A program made the position numbers and the translations under genes. A stretch of DNA of 64,000 nt from Pseudomonas aeruginosa PAO1 (GTDB taxonomy: Bacteria; Pseudomonadota; Gammaproteobacteria; Pseudomonadales; Pseudomonadaceae), in the NCBI RefSeq assembly GCF_000006765.1, contig NC_002516.2; one strand, given 5' to 3'. Below are positions 3,292 through 23,563 of the stretch, one piece after another. How positions within the stretch are numbered: position 1 is the first letter of the stretch; the number at the start of each line of letters is the position of its first letter. The notes under the pieces were generated by a model. It was not told where the DNA came from and did not search any database. It saw nothing but the letters and a program-made list of their open reading frames with translations.

Positions 3292-3369
3292 GGTTCTTCT
3301 TCAGGCTTAGAACGGAGGCGCTTTTTCCAGGCTGCACGATAAGCATTGCAGGGGCCCAGGCAAAGCCTC

Positions 3370-3397
3370 TTTACCCGCTATTTACCCTTGCTTTACC
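3370..3397 (-). promoter_or_regulatory. Triple GTAAA-N6 direct repeat, candidate CpxR site upstream of muxA
   Basis: TTTACC at 3370, 3381 and 3392 (11-bp period); minus strand reads GTAAA-GCAAGG-GTAAA-TAGCGG-GTAAA. Confidence 0.55.
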
Positions 3398-3547
3398 GAT
3401 AGTTAGGCATTCCGCCCGCATGCTTCGGCGAGCCACCCGCAGCCTGGCACCAGGCTATGACAACAAACGGCTTGCTCCGTTACGGGCGAAGGCTTGAAAT
3501 AGAGCGTTCTGCATTCGCCCACTCCGCAATCGGCCAGGGACGCACAG

Positions 3548-4981
3548 ATGATCGACCCGTTGAAACACCGCTTCGCGGCGCTCCGCAGTCGCGCCGAATT
3601 CCACTCCTTGCGCTACGTCCAGCGTAGCGGCGAGTACCTCTCGGTGCGCCGCAACGTCAGCGAACCGCCGCACTTCAGCCAGGACCGCGGCGCCATGCTC
3701 TGCGTACGGCTGAACGGCGTGGAAGCCTACGCCGCCACCAACGATCTCTCCGCGGCCGGCCTGCAGGCCGCCCTGGAGCAGGCCGAACGGCAAGCCGAGC
3801 GGATCGCCCGGCACGCCCTGTTCGACGTCCGCGGATTGCCGCCGGCAAGCGGCCGCTCGCAGTATCGCTCGCCGAACCAGGACGCCCCTTTCCCCTCCCT
3901 CGCCGAGTGCTACGAACTGCTCGCCGAGGAGTCCGCCAAGGTGCCGCGCGACGAGCGCCTGGTGAACTGGAGCGTATTCCTCGAAGTCAGCCGCCAGGAA
4001 CAGCTCTACCTGAACAGCGCCGGCGCCGAGCAATACCACGAGCAGCGCTTCGTCTATCCTGGCGCCAGCGTCACCGCCTACGACGGCCATGACAGCCAGA
4101 CCCGCAGTTTCGGCGGCCACCATGCCGGCCAGCAGGGCGGCGCCGAAGTGATCGAGCGCCTCGGCCTGGTCGGCGCCGCGCCGCGCATCGCCGACCAGGC
4201 CCTGCAACTGCTGGCGGCGCCGAACACCCCGAGCGGCCGCTGCGACCTGCTGCTGATGCCGGACCAGATGATCCTGCAGATCCACGAGTCGATCGGCCAC
4301 CCGCTGGAGCTGGATCGCATCCTCGGCGACGAGCGCAACTACGCCGGTACCAGCTTCATCAAGACCGAGGACTTCGGTCGCTACCAGTACGGCTCCAGCC
4401 TGCTCAATGTCAGCTTCGACCCGGAAATCCCCGAGGAGCTGGCCAGCTACCGCCAGGACGACGACGGCAGCCCCGCGCGCAAGGAATACCTGATCCGCGA
4501 AGGCCGCCTGCTGCGTCCGCTCGGCGGCGCCCTGTCGCAACACCGCAGCGGCCTGGAGGGCGTCGCCAACAGCCGCGCCAGCAGTTGGAACCGCGCGCCC
4601 ATCGACCGCATGGCCAATCTCAACCTGGAGCCCGGCGACAAGAGCTTCGCGCAGCTGGTGGCCGGTATCGAGCGCGGGGTGCTGATGTCCTACAACCGCT
4701 CCTGGTCGATCGACGACGCACGCAACAAGTTCCAGTTCGGCTGCGAATGGGGCCAGTTGATCGAGGACGGCGAACTCAAGGGCGTGGTGAAGAACCCCAA
4801 CTACCGGGGCATCTCCGCGCAGTTCTGGCGCAACCTCAGCGCGGTGGGCGACGCCGGCACCTTCGAGGTGCTCGGCACGCCCTACTGCGGCAAGGGCGAG
4901 CCGAACCAGGTGATCCGTGTCGGCCACGCCTCGCCGGCCTGCGTATTCAGCGATGTGGACGTATTCGGGGGAGATACCTGA
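3548..4981 (+). CDS. tldD: TldD-family metalloprotease
   Basis: 477 aa; HESIGHPLELD zinc motif and C-terminal CGKGEP. Confidence 0.88.
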   Translation: MIDPLKHRFAALRSRAEFHSLRYVQRSGEYLSVRRNVSEPPHFSQDRGAMLCVRLNGVEAYAATNDLSAAGLQAALEQAERQAERIARHALFDVRGLPPASGRSQYRSPNQDAPFPSLAECYELLAEESAKVPRDERLVNWSVFLEVSRQEQLYLNSAGAEQYHEQRFVYPGASVTAYDGHDSQTRSFGGHHAGQQGGAEVIERLGLVGAAPRIADQALQLLAAPNTPSGRCDLLLMPDQMILQIHESIGHPLELDRILGDERNYAGTSFIKTEDFGRYQYGSSLLNVSFDPEIPEELASYRQDDDGSPARKEYLIREGRLLRPLGGALSQHRSGLEGVANSRASSWNRAPIDRMANLNLEPGDKSFAQLVAGIERGVLMSYNRSWSIDDARNKFQFGCEWGQLIEDGELKGVVKNPNYRGISAQFWRNLSAVGDAGTFEVLGTPYCGKGEPNQVIRVGHASPACVFSDVDVFGGDT

Positions 4982-6306
4982 TGCACCAGAGACAGCATTT
5001 CGAAGCCCTCGCCGAGGACCTGCGCCGGCATCTGGCCGAGGGCGAGGACTTCACCCTCTGGTACAGCGCCGAGGACTCCGAGTTCATCCGCTTCAACCGG
5101 GCACGGGTGCGCCAGGCCGGCCGGGTGCGCCAGGCCAGCGCGCTGCTCCGGCTGATTCGCGACGAACGCCAGGCGAGCCTCGACCTGACGCTCTCCGGCG
5201 CGCCGGAAGAAGACCGCCAGCGTCTGGCCGAAGGCCTTCGGCAACTGCGCCAGAGCCTGGCCTGGATTCCCGCCGATCCCTATCTGCTGCTCGACACCTC
5301 GGCCTGGCAGCGAGAGAACCAGGACCTCGGCGCAGCGCCCGACAGCGGCGCGCTGCTGGCCAGCCTCGAACGCCGGGCGCGCGACCTCGACCTGGTCGGC
5401 ATCTATGCCGCCGGACCGCTGTTCCGTGGCTTCGCCAACTCCTGGGGCGCCTTCGGCTGGCATGCCGGCAGCAGCTTCAACTTCGACTGGAGCCTGTTCC
5501 ATGGCAACGGCCAGGCGGTGAAGGCCGACTACGCCGGCCAGCGCTGGGACGACGAAGCCTTCGCCCGGCGCTTCGAACAGGCCCGGGAGCAGCTCGGCCA
5601 CCTGGGCAAGCCGCTGCGCCAGTTGCGCCCCGGCGACTATCGCGCCTACCTGGCGCCGGCGGCGCTCGAGGAAGTCATGCAGATGCTCTGCTGGGGCGGT
5701 TTCTCCGCGCGCGCCCTGGCTACCGGCGAAAGCCCCCTGCAACGCCTGCAGAACGGCGACGCCCTGCTCAGCCCGCTGCTGAACCTCGCCGAGCGCCCTG
5801 CCACCTCGCCCTCCCCGGCATTCAGCGCGGAAGGCTCGCCGCGCGCCGAGGTCGAACTGGTCGGCAACGGCCGCCTGAGCGGACGCCTGGTGAGTTCGCG
5901 CAGCGCCCGCGAATACGGCCTGGTAGCCAATGGCGCCGGCGCCAACGAGGCGCCCACGGCGCTGGACATGGCCGGCGGCAGCCTGGAGCAGGCGCGCATC
6001 CTCGAGGCCCTGGATACCGGCCTGTACATCGGCAACCTGTGGTACCTGAACTACTCGGACATGCCCGCCGCGCGCCTGACCGGAATGACCCGCTTCGCCA
6101 CCTTCTGGGTGGAGAACGGCCAGATCCGGGCACCGGTCAGCACCATGCGCTTCGACGACAGCCTGTACAGCTTCCTCGGCGCCCACCTGGAAGACCTCAG
6201 CCACGAGCGCGAACTGCGCCTGTCCAGCAATACCTACGGCGAACGCCAGACCGACTCGATGCACCTGCCGGGCGCGCTGACCGGGCGCTTCACCCTCACG
6301 CTCTGA
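4981..6306 (+). CDS. TldE/PmbA-family protease partner subunit
   Basis: Start MHQRQHFEAL at 4981, TGATG overlap with the tldD stop; IRFNRARVRQ and GMTRFATFWVENG family motifs; no HExxxH. Confidence 0.85.
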   Translation: MHQRQHFEALAEDLRRHLAEGEDFTLWYSAEDSEFIRFNRARVRQAGRVRQASALLRLIRDERQASLDLTLSGAPEEDRQRLAEGLRQLRQSLAWIPADPYLLLDTSAWQRENQDLGAAPDSGALLASLERRARDLDLVGIYAAGPLFRGFANSWGAFGWHAGSSFNFDWSLFHGNGQAVKADYAGQRWDDEAFARRFEQAREQLGHLGKPLRQLRPGDYRAYLAPAALEEVMQMLCWGGFSARALATGESPLQRLQNGDALLSPLLNLAERPATSPSPAFSAEGSPRAEVELVGNGRLSGRLVSSRSAREYGLVANGAGANEAPTALDMAGGSLEQARILEALDTGLYIGNLWYLNYSDMPAARLTGMTRFATFWVENGQIRAPVSTMRFDDSLYSFLGAHLEDLSHERELRLSSNTYGERQTDSMHLPGALTGRFTLTL

Positions 6307-9913: not shown

Positions 9914-10825
9914 TCATTGCGTCTCGCCGGCCGCCTGGCGACCGAACAGTTCCACCAGCCAGTCGACGAACACCCTCACCCGCGGCGACAACTGGCGCTG
10001 CGAGGGATACACGGCATGCAGCGCCAGCGATGGCGGCAACCATTCTCCGAGCACTTGTCGGAGGCTACCGTCGGCCAGGCCGGCGGCGACGTGATAGTGC
10101 GGCGCCTGGATCAGCCCGAGCCCGGCCCGGCAGGCGGCGACGTAGGCATCGGCGTTGTTGACGCTGACCCGGCTGCGCATCGGCAACGTGCGCAGACGCC
10201 CGTCGACGCTGAACTCGAAGTCGAAGGTACGCCCGCTGGAAGGCGACTGGTAGTTCACCGCGAGGTGCCCGCCGAGCTCGGCGAGCTGCCGCGGATGGCC
10301 ATGACGCTCCAGGTAGGCGGCGCTGGCGCAGGTGACCTGCGGCAGGTCGGCCAGGTGCCGGCCGACCAGGCTCGAATCGTGCAGTTCGCCGACCCGCAGC
10401 ACGCAGTCCGCGCCCTCGCGCAGCAGGTCGACCAGGCGATCGTTGCTGCTCAACTGCAGCTCCAGTTCCGGGTAGCGCTCGCAGAACTCCGGCAGGAACG
10501 GAATCACCCGCATCCGCCCCAGTGCGCCCGGCAGGTCGACCCGCAAGCGCCCGCGCGGGTTGTTCAGGACGCGTGGAAAGCAGCTTTCCGCCTCCTCCAG
10601 GTCCGCCAGCAGGCGCACGCAACGCTCGTAGTAGGCCTGCCCGTCGAGGGTCAGGCTGACCTGGCGGGTGGTGCGCTGCAGCAACTGCACGCCAAGGTGC
10701 GCCTCCAGTTGCTGGATCGCCTGGGTCACGCTGGCGCGCGGCAGCTCCAGGCTGTCCGCGGCCTTGCCGAAGGCGCCCAGCTCGACGATGCGGGTGAAGG
10801 CCTGCATGGCCTGGAAACGATCCAT
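9914..10825 (-). CDS. LysR-family regulator (CrgA-like)
   Basis: MDRFQAM...LEAHLGVQLLQRTTRQVSLT HTH; 303 aa; divergent from an aldo/keto reductase. Confidence 0.93.
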   Translation of the reverse strand: MDRFQAMQAFTRIVELGAFGKAADSLELPRASVTQAIQQLEAHLGVQLLQRTTRQVSLTLDGQAYYERCVRLLADLEEAESCFPRVLNNPRGRLRVDLPGALGRMRVIPFLPEFCERYPELELQLSSNDRLVDLLREGADCVLRVGELHDSSLVGRHLADLPQVTCASAAYLERHGHPRQLAELGGHLAVNYQSPSSGRTFDFEFSVDGRLRTLPMRSRVSVNNADAYVAACRAGLGLIQAPHYHVAAGLADGSLRQVLGEWLPPSLALHAVYPSQRQLSPRVRVFVDWLVELFGRQAAGETQ

Positions 10826-10839
10826 CGGACACCCTCGAT

Positions 10840-10852
10840 TATTTGGAAAATA
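10840..10852. promoter_or_regulatory. LTTR T-N11-A box
   Basis: TATTT-GGA-AAATA dyad between the divergent LysR and AKR genes. Confidence 0.4.
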
Positions 10853-10943
10853 CGAATGGTAAAACCGTAATTATGGGCTTTATCCAGACCAATGCAGAGC
10901 GAAGAATGACGACGTTTTCCTTCCCTCCCGCGAGGCTCGACAC

Positions 10944-11939
10944 ATGAAAACCCGTCAACTCGGCCACAACGGCCCTTCCGTCTCCGCCATCGGCCTCGGC
11001 TGCATGGGCATGACCGACTTCTACACCACCGGCGGCGACCGCCAGGAGGCCATCGCCACCCTGCATCGCGCCGTGGAACTCGGGCTGAACTTCTTCGATA
11101 CCGCCGACATGTACGGCCCGCACAGTAACGAGGAACTGCTCGGCGAGGCCCTGCGCGGCAAACGCGAGCAGGTGTTCCTGGCCAGCAAGTTCGGCATCGT
11201 CCGCGACCCTGCCAATCCCCGGGCGCGCGGCGTCGACGGCAGCCCGGCGTACATCCGCCGCGCCATCGAAGGCAGCCTGAAGCGCCTCGGTACCGACCGC
11301 CTGGACCTGTACTATCAGCACCGCATGGACCCGCAGGTACCCATCGAGGACAGCGTCGGCGCCCTCGCCGACCTGGTGAAGGCCGGCAAGATCCGCCACA
11401 TCGGTCTCAGCGAAGCCTCGGCGGAAACCCTCGAGCGTGCCCACCGGGTGCACCCGATCAGCGCGTTGCAGAGCGAGTACTCGCTGTGGACCCGCGATCC
11501 GGAGGACACCGGGGTGCTCGCCGCCTGCCGTCGCCTGGGCATCGCCTTCGTCCCCTACAGCCCGCTGGGCCGAGGTTTCCTTACCGGCACCCTGAAGCGC
11601 CCGGAAGACTTCGCCGCCGACGACTACCGTCGTTTCAGCCCGCGCTTCCAGGGCGAGAACTTCGCGAAGAACCTGAAGCTGGTGGACAAGGTCGGCGAAC
11701 TGGCCGCAGCCAAGGGCGTGAAACCCTCGCAACTGGCGCTGGCCTGGGTGCTGGCGCAGGGCGATGACCTGATCCCGATTCCCGGCACCAAGCAGCGGCG
11801 CTACCTGGAGGAGAACGTCGCCGCGACGGAATTGCGCCTGAGCGCGGCGGAACTGGCCGAGCTGGATGCGATCTTCCCCGCCGAGGCGGTCGCCGGCAGT
11901 CGCTATAGCGAGGAAGGCATGCGCCTGGTCAATCTCTGA
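10944..11939 (+). CDS. Aldo/keto reductase
   Basis: [34 protein letters not shown]; 331 aa. Confidence 0.93.
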
Positions 11940-11983
11940 GACAGTGAAGCTGCAGTCACGTCCCCGTATGCCGGAGCCTGGTT

Positions 11984-12064
11984 GTAGGGCGAATCACCGC
12001 TTGCGGTTATCCGCCGCTTATCCGGGGTTTCGGCGGATACCGCCTGTGGCGGTATCCGCCCTAC
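11984..12064. repeat. Inverted REP doublet (GTAG-type)
   Basis: GTAGGGCGAATCACCGCTTGCGGTTATCCGCC ... GGCGGATACCGCCTGTGGCGGTATCCGCCCTAC between convergent genes. Confidence 0.8.
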
Positions 12065-12169
12065 GGGTCTCTATCGCTCGCAATTTCCTGGCTGCCTACA
12101 CGGCGGGAAAACGACGACGGGGCGGCCGCCATCGGCAACCGCCCCGCTCCCCTCGGCGCCAGGCGAACC

Positions 12170-13105
12170 TCAGGGCGTCCACCAGTAGCGCACCACGTGG
12201 AAGAAGATCGGCGCGGCGAAGCACACCGAGTCCAGGCGGTCGAGCATGCCACCGTGACCTTCGATCATGTGCCCCCAGTCCTTGACCCCACGGTCGCGCT
12301 TGATCGCCGACATCACCAGGCCGCCGAAGAAGCCCAGCAGGTTGATCAGCAGCGCGATCAACGCCGCCTGCCAGAGGTTGAACGGGGTGATCCACCACAG
12401 CGAGGCGCCGATGGCGGTGGCCAGGGCGATGCCGCCGACGAAGCCTTCGACGGTCTTCGACGGCGACAGGTTGGGAGCGATCTTGCGCTTGCCGAACAGC
12501 TTGCCGCAGATGTACTGCATCACGTCGGAGAGCTGCACGACGATCACCAGGTAGGCGATCAGCAGCAGGTTGCGCCCCTCGAAGCCGGGGATGTCGAGGG
12601 TCAGCAGCGCCGGCACGAAGGAGATACAGAACACCGCCAGCATCAGGCCCCACTGCACTTTCGAGGCGCGCTCGAGGAAGTGCTTGGTGTCGCCGCCCAG
12701 CGAGGCGAGGATCGGCAACAGCAGGAACACGTACACCGGGATGAAGATCGAGAACATGCTGTACCAGTCGATGTAGATCAGCAGGTACTGCATCGGCAGC
12801 ACGAAGTAGAACGCCGCCACCAGCGCCGGGTAGTCGCTGCGCCGGGTCGGGGTGAGGGTGATGAACTCGCGCAGGGCGTAGAACGACACGCCATAGAACA
12901 GCAGGATCACCGCCGCCTGGCCAAGCCAGAAGGCGAAACCGATCACCAGGACCATCGCCCACCAGGCGTTGATCCGCGCGTTCAGGTTGTCGATCACCGC
13001 GTTCGGGCCGGGACCGGCGCGCCACTTGAGGACGAAGCCGACCAGCGAGGCGAGCAGCAGCAGCGCGCCGATCCCGCCGAAGAGCATCCAGGTCTGTTCG
13101 TTCAT
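12170..13105 (-). CDS. Phosphatidate cytidylyltransferase (YnbB/CdsA-like)
   Basis: SPSKTVEG, SAIKRDRGVKDWG, GHGGMLDRLDS CTP_transf_1 motifs. Confidence 0.9.
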   Translation of the reverse strand: MNEQTWMLFGGIGALLLLASLVGFVLKWRAGPGPNAVIDNLNARINAWWAMVLVIGFAFWLGQAAVILLFYGVSFYALREFITLTPTRRSDYPALVAAFYFVLPMQYLLIYIDWYSMFSIFIPVYVFLLLPILASLGGDTKHFLERASKVQWGLMLAVFCISFVPALLTLDIPGFEGRNLLLIAYLVIVVQLSDVMQYICGKLFGKRKIAPNLSPSKTVEGFVGGIALATAIGASLWWITPFNLWQAALIALLINLLGFFGGLVMSAIKRDRGVKDWGHMIEGHGGMLDRLDSVCFAAPIFFHVVRYWWTP

Positions 13106-13106
13106 C

Positions 13107-13736
13107 TCAGGCCTCCTCTTCCGGCGCCAGGTCCAGCAGGGCCATGCGCGCTCGTTCGAGGAACGCCTCCTTGCCTTCTTCCGCCGTGGCGACCAGCGGC
13201 TTGCCGAAGCTCAGGGTGCAGAGCAGCGGCAACGGCAGCATGCGGCCCTTGGGCATGACCCGGTTGAGGTTGGCCAGCCAGACCGGCACCAGCTCGACGT
13301 CCGGGTGGGCCAGGGACAGGTGGTAGATACCGCTCTTGAATGGCAACAGCTTGACCTCGTCGTCCAGGTTGCGGGTGCCCTCGGGGAAGATGATCAGCGA
13401 ATCGCCGCCGTCCAGGGCGCGGTCGAGGGGTTCGAGCGGATTGGCATTGGCCTCGCTGCGCTGGCGGTCGACCAGCACGCCGTTGAACACCTTGTTGATC
13501 ACGTAGCTGCGCAGGCCGGCCTTGTTCCAGTAGTCGGCGCCCGCCACCGGCCGGGTACGCCGCCGCACCTCCGGCGGCAGCGAGGCCCAGAGCAGGACGA
13601 AGTCGCCATGGCTGCTGTGGTTGGCGTAATAGATGCGTTGCTTGGGGATCGGCGTGGTGCCCAGCCAGAGGCTGCGCAAGCCGGTGATGGCGCGGGCGCC
13701 GGCGATGATGCCATAGGCGACGACTGATTCGAGCAT
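13107..13736 (-). CDS. PlsC-type lysophospholipid acyltransferase
   Basis: Start MLESVV at 13736; NHSSHGD (HX4D), IFPEGTR; 209 aa. Confidence 0.88.
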   Translation of the reverse strand: MLESVVAYGIIAGARAITGLRSLWLGTTPIPKQRIYYANHSSHGDFVLLWASLPPEVRRRTRPVAGADYWNKAGLRSYVINKVFNGVLVDRQRSEANANPLEPLDRALDGGDSLIIFPEGTRNLDDEVKLLPFKSGIYHLSLAHPDVELVPVWLANLNRVMPKGRMLPLPLLCTLSFGKPLVATAEEGKEAFLERARMALLDLAPEEEA

Positions 13737-13747
13737 GGGAAGACTCT

Positions 13748-14200
13748 TCAGGTTTGAGCGTTGAATAGAGGGATCGACAACAGGCACGACAAGGCCAGCA
13801 GGAACTGGGCGCCACAGGCCAGCGCCTGCCAGCGTAGCAGGCGCAGGGCGCCGCGGCTGCGCTGGTTCCAGGTGCGCCCTGCGGCGTCCGCTCGGGCCAG
13901 GCCGAGATCGGCCAGGGCCCGGTCCAGGTCTTGGGTCTGCGCTTCCAGCCTGTCGCCGACGCGGCTGAAACGTTCGAACAGTTCGGCGTCCAGGGCCACT
14001 CGCAGCGCCCAGTACTTCTGCCACAGGCCGAGCAGGGCGATCGCCAGCATCGCCGCAGCGAAATAGCGCCAGCCGATGCCCTGCACGGCCTGGTACAGGC
14101 CCAGCCCGATGGCCAGCAGGGTCAGTGCGGCGGACAGCCGGTCAAGCTCGCGGCCACGGCGCAGCAGGGCCGCCACCAGGGCCAGGGTTTGCTCAGGCAT
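13748..14200 (-). CDS. Small membrane protein of unknown function inside the lipid operon
   Basis: 150 aa, about 3 hydrophobic segments; overlaps the upstream stop codon. Confidence 0.72.
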   Translation of the reverse strand: MPEQTLALVAALLRRGRELDRLSAALTLLAIGLGLYQAVQGIGWRYFAAAMLAIALLGLWQKYWALRVALDAELFERFSRVGDRLEAQTQDLDRALADLGLARADAAGRTWNQRSRGALRLLRWQALACGAQFLLALSCLLSIPLFNAQT

Positions 14201-15542
14201 GGCGCACCTCGCCCAGTTCCGCCGATGGCTCCGGCACGCTTCCGCTCAGCGCCGCGAGGGTCCGCCGCTGGGCCTCGCCCAGCAGCACTTGCGGTCGCGC
14301 CCGACGTAACACGGCCACGGCCGACTCGACGTCCGCCGCGCGGCCGCTGAGCAGCAGCCAGGCGGCGACCAGCGTGGCGCTGCGCGAATAGCCCAGGGCA
14401 CAGGCCACCAGCAGCGGCCCTTGCGCCAGCAGTTCGTCGATCAGCACCGCGGCGCGCCGGCAGTCCTCGACGTCCGGCGCGACCAGGTCGAGCAACGGCA
14501 GGCTGCGATAGGCCAGCCCCTGCGGCTCGCAGGAAAGTTCGGCGGTAGCGTCGAGCAATGCGCGGAAGCGGCCGTCGGCCAGTTCCGCGGACGACGGCAG
14601 GCGCCCCAACCAGAGGCCCGGCAGCACCTCGTCCGGCTGCGGCCGGCGACGGGTCCAGAGCCAGGCGTTGATCCGCGCGGCAAGCAGATATGGCGCCAGC
14701 AGCCAGCGCGCGGCGGCGCTCAGGCGGCCAGTGCTGCCCTTCTGGAAGCCGGCGGCGCCGAACAGCAGGTAGTTCAGCGCCACCAGCGCCAGCGCCAGCG
14801 CCGGCCAGCACAGCCACAACGCCGCACCGCCGACGGCAAAGGCGACGGCGGCGCAGGCCAGCGCGCCGAGGCCGTAGCAAGCGGCCAGCCGCCGCCGTTG
14901 CCGGTCGCGGCTCAGACTGGCGCGGGCGAACGGCGCGGGCTGCGCCTGCGGCCACAGCCAGACGCACAGCCAACCGGCCAGCGCGCCGGTGGGCACGTCG
15001 ATGAAATGGTGCTGCCAGGTGGTCAGCACCGACAGCCCGATCAGCGCGAACCAGCCATGCAGCAGCCAGCGCCAGGCGCCGCTGGCGTAGCGCGCGTAGC
15101 AGACCCAGAGCACTACCAGCAGGGCGATGTGCAGCGACGGTGCCTGGTTGTACGGTTTGTCGAACCCCATCAGCACGTCGAACAGCCAGCCGAACACGCC
15201 GCCCAGTTCCGGCCGTTCGAAGGTGAAGCGCAGGGGGAACAGCAGGAAGCAGGTCACCGACAGCACCTGGGCGCTGAGCAGGCGCAGGCAGTGGGTGTCC
15301 AGCTCGCGCTTGTCCCGCGGCAACAACAGCGACAGGCCGTAGAGCAGGTCGATCGACCAGTACGGCAGGATGGTCCAGGGCCACAGCGGCATCCCGCGTT
15401 CCCAGTCGAAGACCAGGCTGCCGACGTCGCCGCGCTGGCTGGTCAACCAGTTGGCCAGGCCATAGCTGGCGAAGAAGAACGGGCCGAGGAACAGCAGCCA
15501 GAGCACCGCCCGCTTCAGTACCCCCGGCTCGCGCGGCGCCAT
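14193..15542 (-). CDS. PAP2-like membrane domain fused to a dual-specificity phosphatase (YnbD-like)
   Basis: Start MAPREPG at 15542; APSLH and HHFID PAP2 motifs; C-terminal ACALGYSRS (CX5R). Confidence 0.85.
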   Translation of the reverse strand: MAPREPGVLKRAVLWLLFLGPFFFASYGLANWLTSQRGDVGSLVFDWERGMPLWPWTILPYWSIDLLYGLSLLLPRDKRELDTHCLRLLSAQVLSVTCFLLFPLRFTFERPELGGVFGWLFDVLMGFDKPYNQAPSLHIALLVVLWVCYARYASGAWRWLLHGWFALIGLSVLTTWQHHFIDVPTGALAGWLCVWLWPQAQPAPFARASLSRDRQRRRLAACYGLGALACAAVAFAVGGAALWLCWPALALALVALNYLLFGAAGFQKGSTGRLSAAARWLLAPYLLAARINAWLWTRRRPQPDEVLPGLWLGRLPSSAELADGRFRALLDATAELSCEPQGLAYRSLPLLDLVAPDVEDCRRAAVLIDELLAQGPLLVACALGYSRSATLVAAWLLLSGRAADVESAVAVLRRARPQVLLGEAQRRTLAALSGSVPEPSAELGEVRHA

Positions 15543-17302
15543 CAGCGGGCGACCTTCTGCGCCAGCGATACGCTGAAGATGCCCCACTGGTCGACCCGCT
15601 GGGTGATCTTGCGGAAGCCGGCGGCGGCCACCAGCTGGTCCATTTCCGCCTGGGTCCGGCGCCGCATCACCCAGGCCTGGCCCTGGCGGTGGCTGGTCAG
15701 CGCGCGGGCGATCAGTTCCAGCTGCGGGTGCCAGGGCTGTCCGGTGTAGACCAGGTAGCCGCCCTCCTCCAGCGCCTCGCCGAGGCCGGCGAGGGAGTCG
15801 CCGACCATGCGGTTGTCGGCGAACAGCTCGTAGAGCCCGGAAACCACCCCGAGGCTCGGCTTCGGTTGCAGCGCCGCCAGGTCGGCGCGATCGAAGGCAT
15901 CGCCCTTGACGAAGCGGGCGATGCCGGCGAGGCCCTTGCTTTCGATCAGGGCGCTGCCGTCACGCACGTTGATCTCGCTGTAGTCGCGCAGGAGGATGCT
16001 TTCCGGCAGCGGCTCGACGCCTTGCAGGGCTTCGAGGATGTAGCGGCCGTGGCCGGCGGCGATGTCGACGATGCGCACCTCGCGCTGCTCCTCGCGCAAC
16101 CGCTGCATGGCCAGGCGCAGCAGTTCCTCGACGTGCAGCTTGCGCTGGCGGATGCCGCGCCAGCCGATGGAGTCCAGGTAGTTGCGGTCGATCAGGCGAC
16201 CCAGCGGGCCGCTGCCGCAGGGCTGGTTGCGGTAGACATAGTCGAGGGTGCTGCCGGAATCGAAGCCGGTGTCGAAGCCCAGCTTGACCCCGTCCGACCA
16301 CAGGCTGCCCAGGCGCAGCCCGGCACGGGTGGCGCGCCAGTAGAGATCGCGCGGCGAGTTCTTCGGCAACGGCGCGGCCAGCGCCTCGGCCTCGGCGCAG
16401 GTATGACCCAGGCGGTCGGCATCAAGCAGGCTCGGTCGTTCAGGTGCCGTGGCGAATGCCTCGAGGAGGAAGCGCCGGGCACGGCCGACGGCCAGGTGAC
16501 GATCGCGCTCGCCAAGGGTGTCGTGGAAGAAGCCGGGCAGGATGTGCTTTTCCTTGCGCAGGCTGCCGAGACGCTCGAAGAAGCGCTCCTGCGGCGCACG
16601 ATGGACGACGAAGTCGGCCCCGGAAATCAGCAGTTGGGTGGGAATCTGGATCGCCTGTGCGTCCGCTACCACCCGCTCGGCAGCTTCGTAGAGGCCGAGC
16701 AGGACGTTCACCGAGATCGCCTTGGCGATCAGCGGGTCGCTGTCGTAGGAGGCGATCCGCTCCGGGTCGTGACTGAGGAAGCGTGCCTTGACATAGCTGT
16801 TGACGAAGAAATTGCCGCGCCACAGGCGCATCAGTTTCAGCCCGCTGCGGGCGAACGGCACGTAGAGCTTGACCTGGAACGCCGGCGAAGCCAGCACCAG
16901 TGCGCGCACCTTCGGCGCGTAGTCGTGGGCCCAGGTGGAAACCAGCACCGCGCCGACGCTCTGCGCCACCACCGCCATCCGCTCTTCGGCGATACCGTGG
17001 ACGGCCTGGATATGGTCGACGAAGGTCTGTACGTCGCGCACGCTGGTGGCAAAGCTCGGGCTGTCGCCGCGGGCGCCTGGCGAGAGGCCGTGGCCACGGG
17101 CGTCCCAGGCGAAGAAGTCGTGTTCCGGCAGGTCGAGTTCGTCGACCAGGTGGGCGATCCGCCCGGAGTGCTCATGGCCGCGGTGGAACAGCAGCACCGC
17201 CTGGCGCGTGCCGTCCGGCGCCGGGCGGCTGGCCGGCCAGTGGCGGTAGAAGAGCTCTACCCCGTCGTGGGTGGTGAAACGCAATTCCTGTACGTCGCGC
17301 AT
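15542..17302 (-). CDS. Alpha/beta hydrolase fused to a class I SAM methyltransferase (YnbC-like)
   Basis: HRGHEHSG, DARGHGLS, AQSVG nucleophile elbow; C-terminal IVDIAAGHG SAM motif; 586 aa. Confidence 0.88.
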   Translation of the reverse strand: MRDVQELRFTTHDGVELFYRHWPASRPAPDGTRQAVLLFHRGHEHSGRIAHLVDELDLPEHDFFAWDARGHGLSPGARGDSPSFATSVRDVQTFVDHIQAVHGIAEERMAVVAQSVGAVLVSTWAHDYAPKVRALVLASPAFQVKLYVPFARSGLKLMRLWRGNFFVNSYVKARFLSHDPERIASYDSDPLIAKAISVNVLLGLYEAAERVVADAQAIQIPTQLLISGADFVVHRAPQERFFERLGSLRKEKHILPGFFHDTLGERDRHLAVGRARRFLLEAFATAPERPSLLDADRLGHTCAEAEALAAPLPKNSPRDLYWRATRAGLRLGSLWSDGVKLGFDTGFDSGSTLDYVYRNQPCGSGPLGRLIDRNYLDSIGWRGIRQRKLHVEELLRLAMQRLREEQREVRIVDIAAGHGRYILEALQGVEPLPESILLRDYSEINVRDGSALIESKGLAGIARFVKGDAFDRADLAALQPKPSLGVVSGLYELFADNRMVGDSLAGLGEALEEGGYLVYTGQPWHPQLELIARALTSHRQGQAWVMRRRTQAEMDQLVAAAGFRKITQRVDQWGIFSVSLAQKVAR

Positions 17303-17391
17303 GTGATGTCCCTATGTCGTTGCCCCGGCCGGGATCCCGGCGGGGTTGCTTCCTGCGGGCGCCCACCTCCATGGCGTTCGCCCGTTCCCTC

Positions 17392-18027
17392 TCAGGCCTG
17401 GCCGTCGCTGCCCCGTCGACTCGCGGCCAGCTCGGCCAGGCCCTGGCGCACGCGGTTGCCGATGGTCAGCAACAGCAGGGCCGCGATCAGCAACATCAGC
17501 CAGTCGATCCAGGCCAGCGGCAACAGGCCGCTGGCCACCCCGGCGCCGATCACGCCGAAACACAGCGCCCGGTCGCTCTTGCCCATCGGGCCGTCGTAGC
17601 GGCGCGAAGCGCCGACCATGGTGCCCAGCGCGCCGGCATATTCGCTGATCACCGCCAGCAGCACCACCAGCACCACCCACAGCGGGTTGACTCCCGGCAA
17701 CAGGGCGAACGGCAGGTACAGGCCGCTGTCGGCGATCACGTCGGTGAGTTCGTTGAGGTAGGCGCCCAGGTCGGATTTCTGGCCGAACTCGCGGGCAAGC
17801 ATGCCGTCCACCGCGTTCAGCGCCATGCGCAGGAACATCCACAGCGGAACGAGGGCGAACAGCCAGAGATGGCTGGCGAAACCGGCGACCAGCGCGCCGA
17901 CCAGCAGGGACAGCAGGCAAGCCGCCAGGGTCACCTGGTTGGCAGTGATGCCGCGCTGGTAGAGGCGCTGCACGCCGGGACGAAGAAGATTCTGAAAGCG
18001 CGGTTTGAGTTGATAGACGGAAATCAT
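17392..18027 (-). CDS. CDP-alcohol phosphatidyltransferase (YnbA-like)
   Basis: DGMLAREFGQKSDLGAYLNELTD motif; 211 aa, hydrophobic. Confidence 0.88.
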   Translation of the reverse strand: MISVYQLKPRFQNLLRPGVQRLYQRGITANQVTLAACLLSLLVGALVAGFASHLWLFALVPLWMFLRMALNAVDGMLAREFGQKSDLGAYLNELTDVIADSGLYLPFALLPGVNPLWVVLVVLLAVISEYAGALGTMVGASRRYDGPMGKSDRALCFGVIGAGVASGLLPLAWIDWLMLLIAALLLLTIGNRVRQGLAELAASRRGSDGQA

Positions 18028-18161
18028 GTCAGCCAGTCCTTGTGCCGAGTTGCTTCGGGCACCGACCTGGCGGTCGGCGCCCGCTCCATTCTACGACGTC
18101 GATGCGCCGCTAAAAGTGACATACTTTTATGCGTTACGCATGGTCCGTATCAGCGCATCCG

Positions 18162-21100
18162 TCAGAAATCGCGCTTGAAGAACAGGTCCAGCGAACTGGC
18201 CAGGCCGCTCGCCGCTTCGAGATAGAGGCGTTTGGTCAACTGGTAGCGCAAGGCGATGGTATTTGCCGGTTCGAACACTCCAACACCATAGCGCAGGCTG
18301 AGCTTGTCGGTGATATTCCCGCTGGCGACCACGCTGGTGCTGTTGCCGGTGCCCTCGGTGTCCAGCTGGAAGTCCTGGATGCCGAGCTGCTTGGCGATTT
18401 CCCCGGTGAGCGGTGCGCTACCGGCCAGGCCCAGGGCCAGGGCCGCCTCGCCGAGCATGTTGCTGTCTTCGCCGGTGCTCATCGGCCGCCCCAGCACCAG
18501 GTAGGACAGCGCCTGCTCCTGGCTCATCGCCGGTTCGGAGAATACCGCGCTGGTCGGCTGCTCGGCGCTGCCGGTCAGGCGCAGGCCGGCGACCACGTCG
18601 TCGACCCGGCGGATCGCCTCGATATCCAGGTACGGCTGGTCGATCGGTCCGGCGAAGAACAGCCGCGCCCTACGGATCGTCAGGCGCTGGCCGTAGGCAC
18701 GATAGCGGCCCTTGTTCAGGTTCAGCTCGCCGCGGGTATCCAGGTTGTCGCCGATGTGCAGGTGGCCGGCCAGTTCGGCGCTGAGGCCGAAGCCGGAAAA
18801 CGCCAGCTTGTCCTGGCCGACCTCGACATCGATGTCCATCTTCATCTTCAGCGGCCGCTGCGCGGGCTGCTCGGAGCCGACGATCACCGCGTCGTCGGAG
18901 ACCTTGACCGTGGATGGCGGCAACTGGCGGATGGTGATGTCGCCACGCGGCACCAGGACCTTGCCGGAGATCGCCAGCTCCTGCCCGGCCATGCCGATCT
19001 TCAGGTCCGGTTCCACCTCCAGTTGCGCATAGGGATCGACCACCACCGGCAGGCGGTTGCCACGGATGTTCAGGGCGACGTTCAGCGCGTCGCCCCAGCT
19101 CAGGTTGCCGGACAGGCTGCCCTGGCCGTACCTGCCGCTGCGCCAGCCGCCGCCGAGTTCCAGGCTTTCGCCAGCGATGCGAGCGTCGAGGGAAAGGTTC
19201 TCGAAGCTGGTCGGCAGCTCGCCGCCGCCAATGTTGCCGTCGCTCAGCGTCACCCGTCCGTCGACCCGCGGCGCCAGCAGGCCGCCGGACAGCCGGCCGC
19301 TGCCGTTCAGCCTGCCTTGCAGTTTCTCCACCATCGGCACGAACGGGCGCGCCAGCGACAGGTCGAGGCCGGCCAGGCTGAACTCGCCGCTCAGCGGCTT
19401 GCTCGCCGGGCGCGGGTCGATCTGCGCCTGCACCCGCAACTCGCCGAGCTTCGGTCCGCGGAAGTCGAGGGAGGTATCGACGCGGTTGGGCGCCAACCGG
19501 CTCTCCAGGCGCAGGCTGTCGTAGCCGACGTCGACCCACTGGCCCTGGTCGCGCAGGCGCAGCGTACCGCTGCCGGCGTCCAGGCTGACCACGCCGCTCG
19601 GGCCGCGGGCCGGAACGTCCAGTTGCAGGTCGCCGTTCAGCTTGCCCTGCCAGGCGAAGTCCTCGGGGAACCATTGCTTCAGGCTGTCCAGCGGGAAGTC
19701 GCGCAGGGTGTAGCGCAGCCGCGGCTCGGGCAGCAGGCGCTGCTCGCCGCCGCAGAGGCTGGCGGCGCCGGATACCCAGCAATGTGCGCCGAAATTGACC
19801 CTGCCGTCGGCCAACCGCTCCAGGCGCGCCGGCTGCTGTAGCTTCCAGTCCTGGCCGCCACTGCTCAACTCGCCGCGCGCCAGGCGACCGCGCCAGTTGC
19901 CGCGCTCCAGTTGCCCGTCGAAGGCCAGGCCGAGCTTGAGCAAGGCACCTTGCAGGTCCAGTTCCAGTTGCTGGCGGCGTTGGTCGCCGCGGGCATTGGC
20001 CTTGAACAGGCCGAGGTCGGTTTCGCCGCTGCGCAGGCCGGAAGCGACCAGCGCCAGGGTGCCGTTCTGCCGGGCATCGAGGTTCGCCTGCAGGTCGAGG
20101 CCGGCGATGCGCTGCTCGGCGTAGGCGATCTGCTGTCCCTTGAGGTTCAGCCTGCCTTGCGGCGCCGCGAGGCTGCCAGCCAGGTCGAGGCGTCCGTCGA
20201 GGCGACCGAAGAGTTGCGGCCAAAGCTGGCCGAGACGGTTCAGGGCGATGTCCAGGCGGCCTTGCAGGCGCTGGTCGAGCGCCCCGCTGCCCTGAACCTT
20301 GTTATCCCCCAGGCGCAGGTCGAGGTTGCCCAGCGTCCAGCGCTGCCCCTCGCCTTCGGCGCGCGCCTGGAATAGCGCCGGCTGGCCGCGCAGGCGGCCC
20401 TTGACGTCGAGATCCACGCCCAACGCCAGCCGCTCGTCGCGAACACTTCCCTGGCTACGCAAGGGACCGGCCAGTGAACCCGGCAGCTCGGCGACCCAGT
20501 AAGCCGGGTTCAGTTCGCTGAGCTGCAGGGCGGTATCCCAAGCCACGCCATTGTCGAAACGCAACGTCACCCTCCCCTCGGCCTGGCCTTGCCCGGCGCG
20601 GAGCTGCAGCGACGGCAGGTTGAGCTGGACGAGGTCGCCGGACACCGGGCTGGCCAGCGTGAAGTCGCCCGCCGGACCGCTCGCCGCCGCGCTGAAATTG
20701 CCCAGGTAGCGCTGGTCCTGGTAATGCACTTCCGCCTTGAAGGTCTTCAGCGTCACCGGCGGCGGCTCCGCCAGCGGATACAGGCGCAGCCAGGGGAAAT
20801 CCTTCCAGTCCAGGGTCGCGTCGGCGGCCAGGCTTTCGCGCCAGTCCAGGCGTCCGACCAGCTCCAGGCGCTGCTCGCCGCCAGCGTCCAGGCGCAGTTG
20901 GCGGATATCCGCGCCCTGGGCGTCGACCCGCCCGTCCAGGCTCAACGCCACCGCCCCGCCCTCGCCCGGCAGGCTGGCGCCGCCGCGGATCAGGTAACCG
21001 CTCTTGAGATCGCCGCTGGCATCGAGCTGGATGGCATTCAGGGTCAAGGTGTCCGGTAGTCCGGCCGCCCCCTTGAAACCGTCGGCGCGGATCAGCAATC

Positions 21101-21827
21101 GTGCCGGCAGGTTTTCCGCCAGCGCCTGCAACTGTCCTTCCAGGCTGCCGTCCAGGTAACCGCTGCTGCGGCCTTTCAGGGTCAGCGCCTGCTGCAGCTC
21201 ACCGCCGACCTGGACGGCCAGCTTCCACGGCTTGCCTTCGGGAGCGGGCAGGCCGAGCGTGGCTTCGGCCTGCAAGGGCCAGTCGCCGCTCGGCTGCAAG
21301 CGCCCCTGGAGCGCCAGGTCCAGGCCGAAGCCCCGCGCCGTCAGCGAGTCGATGTGCAGGCCGTCGGCCAGCCAATGGGCCGCCAGCTTGAGTTCGGCGA
21401 CCTGCTGGTTGCCGTCGAGCAGGAAGCTGCCGACCGCCACTTCGCCGAGCTCGATGCTCAGCGGCAGTTTCAGCGTCGGCAGGCTGATCGGCCCGCTGTC
21501 GGCGCTGTCGCCGCTCGGCGGCAGGTCCAGCGCGACCCGTTCGGCGGCCACCCGCTGCAGGCACAGGCGCAGCCCCGCCAGGCAGGCCGGCGACCAGCGC
21601 AGTTCCGGCCGCTCGACGACCAGTTGCGTACCGTCCTGCGCCCAGGACAGTCGCTGTGCCTGCCAGGCGCCACCGAGGCGACCCTCGAAGCCGCTGACCT
21701 GCAGGCCCGGCACGCGGCCGAGCAGCCAGGCGCTGCCGGTCTGGGTGCCGAGCAGCGCAGCGAGTCCCAGGAGCAACGCGAGGAGCAGCCCGACTATGGC
21801 CAGCAAGGTGATCTTCAGCGCCTTCAC
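18162..21827 (-). CDS. tamB: Translocation and assembly module subunit TamB
   Basis: GTG start at 21827 (MKALKITLL) overlapping the tamA stop; N-terminal TM, long beta-rich body, DUF490-like C-terminus (LDLFFKRDF); 1221 aa. Confidence 0.92.
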   Translation of the reverse strand: MKALKITLLAIVGLLLALLLGLAALLGTQTGSAWLLGRVPGLQVSGFEGRLGGAWQAQRLSWAQDGTQLVVERPELRWSPACLAGLRLCLQRVAAERVALDLPPSGDSADSGPISLPTLKLPLSIELGEVAVGSFLLDGNQQVAELKLAAHWLADGLHIDSLTARGFGLDLALQGRLQPSGDWPLQAEATLGLPAPEGKPWKLAVQVGGELQQALTLKGRSSGYLDGSLEGQLQALAENLPARLLIRADGFKGAAGLPDTLTLNAIQLDASGDLKSGYLIRGGASLPGEGGAVALSLDGRVDAQGADIRQLRLDAGGEQRLELVGRLDWRESLAADATLDWKDFPWLRLYPLAEPPPVTLKTFKAEVHYQDQRYLGNFSAAASGPAGDFTLASPVSGDLVQLNLPSLQLRAGQGQAEGRVTLRFDNGVAWDTALQLSELNPAYWVAELPGSLAGPLRSQGSVRDERLALGVDLDVKGRLRGQPALFQARAEGEGQRWTLGNLDLRLGDNKVQGSGALDQRLQGRLDIALNRLGQLWPQLFGRLDGRLDLAGSLAAPQGRLNLKGQQIAYAEQRIAGLDLQANLDARQNGTLALVASGLRSGETDLGLFKANARGDQRRQQLELDLQGALLKLGLAFDGQLERGNWRGRLARGELSSGGQDWKLQQPARLERLADGRVNFGAHCWVSGAASLCGGEQRLLPEPRLRYTLRDFPLDSLKQWFPEDFAWQGKLNGDLQLDVPARGPSGVVSLDAGSGTLRLRDQGQWVDVGYDSLRLESRLAPNRVDTSLDFRGPKLGELRVQAQIDPRPASKPLSGEFSLAGLDLSLARPFVPMVEKLQGRLNGSGRLSGGLLAPRVDGRVTLSDGNIGGGELPTSFENLSLDARIAGESLELGGGWRSGRYGQGSLSGNLSWGDALNVALNIRGNRLPVVVDPYAQLEVEPDLKIGMAGQELAISGKVLVPRGDITIRQLPPSTVKVSDDAVIVGSEQPAQRPLKMKMDIDVEVGQDKLAFSGFGLSAELAGHLHIGDNLDTRGELNLNKGRYRAYGQRLTIRRARLFFAGPIDQPYLDIEAIRRVDDVVAGLRLTGSAEQPTSAVFSEPAMSQEQALSYLVLGRPMSTGEDSNMLGEAALALGLAGSAPLTGEIAKQLGIQDFQLDTEGTGNSTSVVASGNITDKLSLRYGVGVFEPANTIALRYQLTKRLYLEAASGLASSLDLFFKRDF

Positions 21828-23563
21828 AGTTCTGGCCCCATGGAGAAGTGCAGGCGGAAACCGCCGTCGTCGTCGAGCGCATGGGCCAGGTCGAGGCGCA
21901 ACGGGCCGACCGGCGAGACCCAGCGCACGCCGAAGCCGACCCCGGTCTTGATCGACGGGAAGTCCAGCGAGTTGAAGGCGTTGCCCTGGTCGACGAAGGT
22001 CGCCAGGCGCCAGCGCTCGGCCAGCGGATATTGATACTCGACGCTGCCGGCGATCATGTAGCGGCCGCCGATCTTGTCGCCATCGGAATTCTCCGGCGAC
22101 AGCGTCCGGTAGTCGTAGCCACGCACGCTCTGGTCGCCGCCAGCGAAGAAGCGCAGCGAGGGCGGGATCGACTTGTAGTCGTTGGTGGCGATTCCGCCTA
22201 CCTGCAGGCGGCCGAGCAGGCGATGGCCGCCGGCGAAGCTGGTCAGGCCCTTGGCCATGGCGTCGACATGGAGGACGTCGGCGTCGGCCAGCAGGCCTTC
22301 CTTCGCCCCCTTGACGTTGAACTGCAGGCGGTAGCCATGGCTGGGGTCGACCTTGTTGTCGGTCTCCAGCAGCGAGTAGCCGATCCCCGGCATCAGGAAG
22401 CTGCTCAGCCCGGAGTCGTCGCCCAGCTTGTACTCCTCGCGCATCCAGTTCAGCGAAACCACCCGCTGCCAGCCATCGGGCCGCTTGCTGTGCCATTCGC
22501 CGCCAAGGGTCAGCAGCTTGCTCTCGGTGTCGACCAGGTCTTCGAACTGGTAGCCGCTGGTGAAGCGCAGCTTGTCGGTGAGCGGCGGATCGAGGGGAAT
22601 CTCGTACCAGGCGCCGACGTTCTGCCGTGGTGCGGAGATTTCCGACTCGAATCCCAGGCTATGTCCTTCGGCATTCACCCAATGGCGGGTCCAGTTGAAC
22701 CTCGCGCGCGCCCCGACGTCGGTCGAGAAACCGAGGCCGACGCCCATGGTCCGGGGCTTGCGCGCCTCCAGCCGGACCGCTACCGGGATCGCCTGGCGCG
22801 CGCCGTCGGCCTGCGCCTGGGTCGGCGCGGCGTCGACCCGCACGCCCTCGAAGTAGCCGCTGGATTGCAGGTTCTGGTTGAGTTCGGCGATCAGTTCGGA
22901 GTCATAGGGTTGGCCGGCCTTGAACGGCACCATGCGGCGCAACAGTTCTTCCTCGATGATCGAGTCGCCGTCGAAGCTCACCTTGCCGAAGGTGTAGCGC
23001 TGGCCGCTGTCGTAGACCAGGTCGATGTCGGCGATGCCGGCGCGCGGATCGATGCTCAGGCGCTGGGTGCTGAAGCGGCCCTGGAAGAAGCCGTAGCGCG
23101 AGGCCTGGTTCTGGATCAGCCGCTTGGCATCCTCGTAGACACCCTGGTTCAGCTTCGCGCCCGGTTTCAGCTGCTTGCCCGACGGCAAGCGGAAGCTCTC
23201 CAGGCTGGCGGCCTCGCCGAGCACCTGGATATTCACCTGGCGCAGGCGCACGGGCTCGCCGGGCACTACCTTGAGCGTGAGCTTCGGCGGCTTGCCGTCC
23301 TTCACCTCGCTGTCGATCTGCGCCTGGAAGTAGCCGAGCGCCTGGGCCGCCTTTTCCGCCTGCGCTTCGGCATTGCGGCGGAAACGTTGCAACGCCGCTT
23401 CGTCCCGCTCGCCGAGGCTACCCACATAGGCCTCGATATTGGCCTTCAGGGCGGCATTGGCGGGGGTGACGCGCACGCTAAGCTGGCTCTCCGCGAAGGC
23501 GGCCGTACTCAGGCACAGCAGCCCGGCCAGCGGGAACCGGAACAATCCTTGAGTCAGTCTCAT
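21824..23563 (-). CDS. tamA: Omp85-family autotransporter assembly protein TamA
   Basis: Signal peptide, POTRA repeats, [24 protein letters not shown]; 579 aa. Confidence 0.93.

Follow-up and report, generated by a model that had tools for sequence, protein, structure and literature searches.

The cluster described here lies in a 64,000-nucleotide stretch of Pseudomonas aeruginosa PAO1 (NCBI RefSeq assembly GCF_000006765.1, contig NC_002516.2), which is called the window below. Six consecutive co-directional open reading frames on the minus strand at 12170–18027 are the P. aeruginosa operon arc1A-F (PA2541–PA2536). The name of this operon, its regulation and its phenotype in defence against type VI secretion system (T6SS) attack have already been published. 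With moderate confidence we read arc1 as an operon for survival of T6SS attack that makes a tailored, non-bulk glycerophospholipid or sustains a repair flux; the order of the reactions and the product are what we infer from the enzymes encoded.

Ting et al. (eLife 2022, PMC8926400) named PA2541–36 arc1A-F, antagonism resistance cluster 1, in 2022 and reported that it has a very low basal expression and is strongly induced through Gac/Rsm. Mutants deleted for arc1 were less fit and survived less well against the T6SS of Burkholderia thailandensis, and the defence was not attributable to any single effector. According to these authors, five of the six products are related to phospholipids and four resemble enzymes of phosphatidylglycerol synthesis (PMC8926400). 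A CRISPR interference screen has recovered arc1 again (Nat Commun 2025, PMC12663445), and arc1A was found to contribute to full resistance against the lipase effectors TseL of Vibrio cholerae and Tle1 of Acinetobacter baylyi (PMC12663445). PA2541 also appears in the literature among the direct targets of RsmA, which has one site there, around the Shine-Dalgarno sequence (PMC4066749). The cluster in the window is identified as arc1 because it holds the same six genes and because the published primers match it exactly. Four PAO1 primers of PMC8926400 align without mismatch, at the start of PA2541 (18007–18027), at the PA2537/PA2536 junction (13097–13116, the exact match of a deletion primer to the boundary of arc1E and arc1F), in tamB 1 kb upstream (18999–19018) and 0.8 kb downstream (11397–11416). 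The protein cluster nearest to Arc1B is 99% identical. A sequence-only reading of the window had taken the cluster for an undescribed system, which these three papers contradict. Both arc1 papers (PMC8926400, PMC12663445) deal with the same locus and the same genes and provide genetics and regulation only, with no enzymology or product. The gene letters are ambiguous in the literature, because PMC8926400 equates arc1A-F with PA2541–36 in its text and calls a PA2541-VSV-G fusion and a PA2541 expression construct 'Arc1F' in its methods, and the main text of PMC12663445 uses 'arc1A' without a locus tag.

All six genes and all domain calls of the sequence-only reading were borne out by Pfam (CDP-OH_P_transf, Hydrolase_4 with Methyltransf_20, weak PAP2/PAP2_3 with DSPc, no family, Acyltransferase, and CTP_transf_1, from arc1A to arc1F; coordinates in the table). 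Four products are orthologues of the E. coli K-12 Ynb proteins, as had been noticed, with identities over nearly the full length (BLASTP) of 50% for YnbA, 56% for YnbC, 40% for YnbD and 39% for YnbB. For arc1C the most likely start is the ATG at 15542 (449 aa; open reading frame as listed, 14193–15587), and for arc1E the ATG at 13736 (209 aa; as listed, 13107–14024). The genes had been called tightly coupled, and this holds for four of the five junctions (overlaps of 1 nt, where the arc1C ATG shares one base with the arc1B stop in TGATG, and of 8 nt, followed by gaps of 11 nt and 1 nt) and fails for arc1A-arc1B, which are separated by 89 nt.

Conservation of the cluster was assessed in the best 80 loci of a scan of one genome per species (79 Pseudomonadaceae and one metagenome-assembled genome, MAG, of the Acetobacteraceae) with flanks of about 10 kb. 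The six genes stand in the order A-F of the window in 72 of these loci, and since the same genes recur in the same order in 72 other Pseudomonadaceae species, chance is excluded. The median junctions in the other species are 11, -1, -11, 9 and 1 nt, so that the A-B gap has a median of 11 nt vs. 89 nt here. Three exceptions to the order were found. Stutzerimonas (L075 8301–11752; L077) has the hydrolase-methyltransferase gene without other arc1 genes, directly after a gene for a fusion of a VTT (DedA-like) domain with PAP2. The P. parafulva locus has no arc1C, and only arc1B-C-D were detected in P. oryzagri.

Features of the arc1 region in the window
Feature	Position	Strand	Description
arc1A / PA2541	17392..18027	-	YnbA orthologue, CDP-alcohol phosphotransferase with variant motif NxxDGxxAR-x8-GxxxNExxDxxxD
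arc1B / PA2540	15542..17302	-	YnbC orthologue: serine hydrolase (~1-270) and class I S-adenosylmethionine (SAM) methyltransferase (~276-586)
arc1C / PA2539	14193..15542	-	YnbD orthologue: N-terminal PAP2-type membrane domain and C-terminal dual-specificity (Cys) phosphatase
arc1D / PA2538	13748..14200	-	150-aa membrane protein, no family, ~3 hydrophobic helices
arc1E / PA2537	13107..13736	-	PlsC/LPLAT-type acyltransferase, 209 aa
arc1F / PA2536	12170..13105	-	YnbB orthologue, CdsA-type cytidylyltransferase
Small hairpin	18029..18048	-	ACAAGGAC in the loop, over the arc1A Shine-Dalgarno sequence (RNA fold)
Leader hairpin	18056..18083	-	GC-rich, 12 bp, GCCA loop (RNA fold)
TAGAAT	18088..18093	-	-10-like hexamer, candidate promoter element read in the sequence
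Intrinsic terminator	12107..12147	-	after arc1F; 14-pair stem (12117-12147), then CGTCGTTTTC T-run (terminator scan)

The catalytic motifs of the arc1 enzymes are conserved across 75–82 orthologues. Arc1A, the CDP (cytidine diphosphate)-alcohol phosphotransferase, scores 33.5 bits with Pfam PF01066, above the gathering cut-off of 22. Its motif reads N71-x2-D74-G-x2-A-R-x8-G-x3-N92-E-x2-D96-x3-D100 and departs from the four-aspartate signature D1xxD2GxxAR...GxxxD3xxxD4. Both N71 and N92 are invariant in 75 orthologues, that of E. coli included, and are present in 133 and 138, respectively, of 144 diverse sequences of the YnbA family (143 cluster representatives and the window protein). Judged from these alignments, the Asn-Asp-Asn-Asp motif is a signature of the YnbA family and not decay. 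The nearest NCBIfam models are NF040950 (73.7 bits, cut-off 180) and NF045883 (50.4 bits, cut-off 170). Assignment of Arc1A as a phosphatidylinositol phosphate (PIP) or archaetidylinositol phosphate synthase was rejected on these scores and on the lack of conservation of the acceptor-binding residues.

Arc1B joins an alpha/beta hydrolase of the monoacylglycerol-lipase-like kind (Pfam Hydrolase_4, PF12146, 234.5 bits) to a methyltransferase (Methyltransf_20, PF12147, 525.6 bits over the whole model). The hydrolase half matches monoacylglycerol lipases of the Protein Data Bank (PDB) by sequence (E = 1e-18), and monoacylglycerol lipases are also the top Foldseek matches (TM ~0.8) of the AlphaFold2 (AF2) model (pLDDT 77); a weak resemblance to lysophospholipase L2 was also observed. 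A Ser-Asp-His triad is invariant (AQS115VG, D230, H260). In the methyltransferase half DIAAGHG is invariant, and the SAM motifs VDIAAGHGRY, LLRDYS and GDAFD are conserved. A profile search of PDB sequences gave nothing useful and no close solved relative for this half, and the best 50 Foldseek matches listed all fell on the hydrolase domain, with none on the methyltransferase. The literature search likewise found no paper on the PF12147 family and no substrate for any of its members. Neither Arc1B nor Arc1E has a strong hydrophobic segment. Two irregular arc1B genes were encountered, one with an in-frame stop in P. violetae and one with an insertion of about 48 aa inside the methyltransferase domain in Phytopseudomonas dryadis.

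Arc1C combines a membrane domain of the PAP2 type with a dual-specificity phosphatase (DSP) domain. DSPc is matched with 35.3 bits against a cut-off of 33.5, and PAP2 and PAP2_3 with about 20–23 bits, below their cut-offs of 27.2 and 27; all 16 family members compared match PAP2. In the AF2 model (pLDDT 88, pTM 0.87) the C-terminal domain has the DSP fold; Tk-PTP and DUSPs lead the Foldseek matches, with TM 0.75–0.83 to Tk-PTP, DUSP5 and DUSP23. The general acid D352 and the P-loop C381ALGYSR387 (C381-x5-R387) are invariant. On comparison of the PAP2 motif set (KxxxxxxRP, PSGH and SRxxxxxHxxxD), the catalytic His-His-Asp was also found to be invariant (P135-S-L-H138 and S171-x6-H178-x3-D182), as was the RP of the first motif (C1). 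In a profile search of PDB sequences only the third motif (C3) gave a match, a weak one to phospholipid phosphatase 1 (E = 0.008), and the best 50 Foldseek matches listed all belong to the DSP domain, with no neighbour of the PAP2 domain among them. From the helices of the AF2 model and the positive-inside rule, applied to the Arg-rich loops 197–213, 74–79 and 297–300, the PAP2 motifs are predicted to lie on the periplasmic side of the membrane and the DSP domain on the cytoplasmic side.

The small membrane protein Arc1D has no Pfam or NCBIfam match. It stands at the same position in 75 Pseudomonadaceae loci with 38–56% identity and has a conserved QKYxAxRVxxDAxLF. Arc1E is an acyltransferase by Pfam PF01553 (59.7 bits), with NHSSHGD (the HX4D motif) and FPEGTR conserved in 75 sequences. 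Arc1F scores 255.9 bits with PF01148, keeps the C-terminal CdsA signature SxxKRxxxxKD...HGGxxDRxD and has a conserved SAIKRDRGVKDWGHMIEGHGGMLDRLD.

An alternative reading is a second copy of the normal pathway. In such a back-up or repair line arc1 would duplicate PlsC-CdsA-PgsA-Pgp and boost ordinary phosphatidylglycerol or phosphatidic acid after lipase damage, with no new lipid made. The presence of acyltransferase, CdsA-like, CDP-alcohol phosphotransferase and phosphatase domains is in keeping with this, as are the likeness of four products to phosphatidylglycerol-synthesis enzymes seen by Ting et al. and a phenotype directed against lipase effectors. We nevertheless consider it unlikely. 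The NCBIfam equivalog scores lie far below their cut-offs for PgsA (TIGR00560, 22.3 vs. 109.1 bits), CdsA (PRK11624, 89.5 vs. 385 bits) and PlsC (17.8 vs. 501 bits), which also agrees with the earlier proposal of a lipid pathway that runs alongside the housekeeping one as an auxiliary. In E. coli the CdsA paralogue YnbB is non-essential and does not complement a cdsA knockout (PMC6362211). The variant motif of Arc1A is conserved family-wide, and phosphatidylglycerol synthesis needs neither a fused hydrolase-methyltransferase nor the patatin and short-chain dehydrogenase/reductase (SDR) genes that accompany the Ynb-type genes in other taxa.

Those other taxa were reached by a HMMER search of the full library with Arc1A. 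At the 50% identity level, 259 clusters were matched with E <= 1e-30 and 906 with E <= 1e-10, with Fusobacterium ulcerans, Crocinitomicaceae, Flavobacteriales and gammaproteobacterial MAGs among the members. Six distant neighbourhoods of the YnbA type were examined, and the same types of enzyme were found in shuffled orders. The order is patatin, SDR, YnbD, YnbC, YnbA, YnbB in F. ulcerans (L082/L083, patatin/SDR at 3137–4995); YnbA, YnbC, patatin, SDR, facing YnbB and YnbD, on a marine metagenomic scaffold (L087, patatin/SDR at 10433–12227); and YnbB, YnbA, acyltransferase, YnbC, YnbD and a 128-aa protein on a low-GC contig (L089), where the last matches the Arc1D profile with E = 8.6e-6 in a search of 10 sequences. 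A Crocinitomicaceae cluster and a gammaproteobacterial MAG have YnbA, YnbB and an acyltransferase only, and one further contig has YnbC, a second methyltransferase, YnbB and YnbA. YnbA, YnbB, YnbC and YnbD are thus encoded together also in F. ulcerans and two metagenomic loci. F. ulcerans and the marine scaffold carry patatin and SDR where Pseudomonas carries the acyltransferase and the small membrane protein. After the YnbA-YnbB-acyltransferase genes of the gammaproteobacterial MAG a weak VTT-like protein is encoded (L086 10229–10816). Overall, the neighbourhoods compared show an arc1 order kept in 72 species and YnbA and YnbB together in the distant bacteria sampled. This suggests that YnbA and YnbB, always paired in these neighbourhoods, form a core to which the acyltransferase, YnbC with YnbD, and patatin with SDR are optional modules.

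The reaction sequence that we propose for arc1 starts from this core. That a CdsA paralogue and a CDP-alcohol phosphotransferase are constantly paired in it suggests that Arc1F makes CDP-diacylglycerol and passes it on to Arc1A, and the frequent acyltransferase partner suggests that phosphatidic acid is supplied from a lyso-lipid. On the cytoplasmic face, Arc1E would acylate a lyso-lipid, for example lysophosphatidic acid to phosphatidic acid; Arc1F would activate phosphatidic acid with cytidine triphosphate to CDP-diacylglycerol; and Arc1A would pass the phosphatidyl group to an acceptor, probably a phosphorylated one. The cytoplasmic Cys-phosphatase implies that the product would first carry a phosphomonoester, as phosphatidylglycerol phosphate and PIP do, and this terminal phosphate would be removed by that domain of Arc1C. 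The fusion of hydrolase and methyltransferase points to tailoring, in which Arc1B would take off one acyl chain and then methylate the lipid or the freed fatty acid. Finally, the outward-facing PAP2 site points to a step on the periplasmic leaflet, where T6SS lipases act, and which the PAP2 domain of Arc1C would carry out. The outcome would be either a tailored glycerophospholipid made in less than bulk amounts or a flux that repairs the products of lipases, and an inner membrane more tolerant of phospholipase damage. The five-step lipid scheme of the sequence-only reading keeps its domains and gene content; as a scheme it is conjectural, the motif of Arc1A being non-canonical and PAP2 perhaps not a simple phosphatase.

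Several observations weigh against this reading. Two of the four signature aspartates of Arc1A, D1 and D3, are Asn. The closest solved structure is PgsA1 of Mycobacterium tuberculosis (PDB 6H53/6H5A; 6h5a, E = 4e-4), in which Mg-1 is bound by D68, D71 and D89, and Mg-2 by D89 together with D93, which presumably acts as the base (PMC6506517). N71 and N92 of Arc1A align with D68 and D89 of 6H5A, and since Asn thus stands at magnesium-binding positions Arc1A may carry out something other than plain phosphatidyl transfer. D96 is followed by Val (by Val, Ile or Leu in 127 of the 144 sequences), in the place of the acceptor-phosphate-binding R94 of PgsA1, which weakens the step with a phosphorylated acceptor; K135 and R137 of PgsA1 are not conserved either. 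The PAP2 domain of Arc1C lacks the Lys of C1 (Pro instead) and the Arg of C3 (Val instead), and on these motifs it might act as a transferase instead of a phosphatase. Basic motif residues are likewise lost in PAP2 transferases of the sphingomyelin-synthase type. The Bacteroidota and gammaproteobacterial MAG clusters have no YnbC or YnbD and Stutzerimonas has YnbC alone, so that the six steps are not one indivisible pathway. The arc1 mutants had no defect under heat, peroxide, salt or detergent (PMC8926400). Lastly, no paper naming a lipid product of arc1 or of ynbABCD was found in the literature searched, in agreement with the earlier remark that no product had been identified.

A bolder form of the proposal can be put forward tentatively. 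Arc1 and Ynb might make an undescribed class of lipid, such as a methylated, partly deacylated or pyrophosphate-linked phosphatidyl derivative, by way of a subfamily of CDP-alcohol phosphotransferases whose metal site has the non-canonical form Asn-Asp-Asn-Asp; the module with its YnbA and YnbB core would be conserved in Pseudomonas and E. coli and as far as the Fusobacteria and Bacteroidota, and would serve in Pseudomonas as an inducible armour against phospholipases.

A related possibility is a product of the MPIase type, in which Arc1F and Arc1A would join CDP-diacylglycerol with a phosphate monoester, for instance a sugar-1-phosphate, to give X-PP-diacylglycerol, and the periplasm-facing PAP2 domain would recycle diacylglycerol pyrophosphate. 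Overproduction of YnbB raises the glycolipid MPIase in E. coli, and YnbB has been described as dedicated to MPIase synthesis through N-acetylglucosamine-pyrophosphate-diacylglycerol (PMC6362211; review PMC11413397). With two acidic residues lost, Arc1A could accept a nucleophile that is anionic, and the PAP2 active site of Arc1C is predicted to face outward. However, a ynbB knockout changes the MPIase level only marginally (PMC6362211), no glycosyltransferase or flippase gene was present in any cluster examined, and nothing in the literature searched showed MPIase in Pseudomonas. As the hydrolase-methyltransferase would also be left without a role, we regard this explanation as very doubtful. 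It is highly improbable that arc1 is a clean-up pathway parallel to Arc3/Aas, in which Arc1B and Arc1E would remove lysophospholipids by lysophospholipase-like cleavage and re-acylation, the methyltransferase would neutralise freed fatty acids as methyl esters and the CDP branch would only recycle the backbone: the monoacylglycerol lipase and lysophospholipase L2 likenesses of Arc1B, a phenotype against lipase effectors alongside arc3A and aas (PMC12663445) and the patatin phospholipase genes of related clusters are consistent with it, but the constant core across phyla is YnbA and YnbB and not the hydrolase, the defence in the B. thailandensis screen is not bound to a single effector, and the methyltransferase family of Arc1B has, as mentioned, no member for which a substrate was found.

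The leader of arc1A is consistent with the published regulation. It has a candidate RsmA-type GGA site, as expected from that regulation, in a small hairpin with ACAAGGAC in its loop at 18036–18043, the GGA at 18037–18039 and the AAGGA Shine-Dalgarno sequence in the loop. This placement of an A(N)GGA motif, looped out of a hairpin across the Shine-Dalgarno sequence, is consistent with the reported status of PA2541 as an RsmA target (PMC4066749), and the shape is classic for an RsmA/CsrA site; the hairpin is a probable, predicted RsmA binding site. Of 76 aligned leaders, 63 have a GGA no more than 25 nt from the start, which is weak evidence since Shine-Dalgarno sequences often hold GGA anyway. 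The 76-nt leader as a whole folds at -35.1 kcal/mol (z = -3.55, with none of 200 shuffles as stable). The larger leader hairpin described earlier is present, with a stem of 12 bp instead of the 9 bp that had been given, and was not conserved in the other Pseudomonas leaders compared. The -10-like TAGAAT noted upstream of it is also present; a consensus promoter scan of 11800–18400 gave no paired -35/-10 site. A sigma-70 promoter is accordingly unsupported, TAGAAT alone being weak evidence; the hexamer is retained as a promoter candidate, with transcriptional read-through from tamB as a possible alternative. The A-B gap (17303–17391) contains a GC-rich stem and several copies of GGA, including one within the Shine-Dalgarno sequence of arc1B (AUAGGGACAUCACAUG), and the RNA fold of the gap does not exceed shuffles in stability (z = -1.1).

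Upstream on the same strand, 134 nt from arc1A, lie tamA (Omp85/POTRA_TamA_1) and tamB (18162–23563). TamB-type proteins have been linked to phospholipid transport, and the adjacency with arc1 is not conserved. That the operon stands directly downstream of tamAB, as had been pointed out, is correct; it carries no functional weight, since tblastn with TamA and TamB found neither gene within the flanks of about 10 kb in any of the 80 related loci. A functional link of arc1 to tamAB is therefore rejected, and the adjacency is a peculiarity of P. aeruginosa outside the system. Downstream of arc1F are a LysR gene and a gene for an aldo-keto reductase, the latter convergent with arc1. A perfect 13-bp inverted repeat at 12032–12060 separates the end of this reductase gene from the arc1F terminator (GGCGGATACCGCC-ACA-GGCGGTATCCGCC), which could be an element like the repetitive extragenic palindromes or a second, bidirectional terminator. 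An Rfam scan of the region (E <= 1) gave a chance microRNA match only, PADLOC defence models gave no real match, no tRNA genes were found in 9–24 kb of the window, and no second CDP-alcohol phosphotransferase gene (the housekeeping pgsA) was found in the window.

This analysis adds four points: an Asn-Asp-Asn-Asp motif that runs through the whole family, a topology of Arc1C predicted to be two-sided, a modular synteny across phyla with its core of YnbA and YnbB, and the irrelevance of tamAB. They concern a module of lipid enzymes present in E. coli K-12 and essentially every Pseudomonas, with relatives in Fusobacterium and Bacteroidota and with a measurable role for fitness in interbacterial warfare. 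Identification of the product would help to complete the lipid maps of two model organisms, would explain how cells tolerate phospholipase toxins, and would establish what reactions are catalysed by the PF12147 methyltransferases and by a subfamily of CDP-alcohol phosphotransferases whose metal site is altered. The split between core and tailoring genes points experimenters to minimal gene sets for expression.

Among known systems, the housekeeping series PlsC, CdsA, PgsA and PgpA/B/C uses the same superfamilies in the same logical order of acylation, CDP activation, phosphatidyl transfer and dephosphorylation. In contrast, arc1 has equivalog scores below the cut-offs, an altered CDP-alcohol phosphotransferase motif, a phosphatase that is a fusion of PAP2 and DSP, and an additional hydrolase-methyltransferase. 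Arc3A/B and Aas of P. aeruginosa belong to the same regulon as Arc1 and show the same kind of phenotype against T6SS lipases; their proteins are unrelated to those of Arc1, and Arc3 has been published as preventing the accumulation of lysophospholipids. A further counterpart is ynbABCD of E. coli K-12 (b1408–b1411), in which the domain architectures are the same as in the four arc1 orthologues and the Asn-Asp-Asn-Asp motif is shared. The E. coli cluster has four genes in the order A-B-C-D, without the acyltransferase and the small membrane protein, whereas the order in the window is YnbA, YnbC, YnbD, small protein, acyltransferase, YnbB. The two also differ in regulation, the ynb genes being controlled by BglJ-RcsB, which activates ynbA, and by cold, and arc1 by Gac/Rsm.

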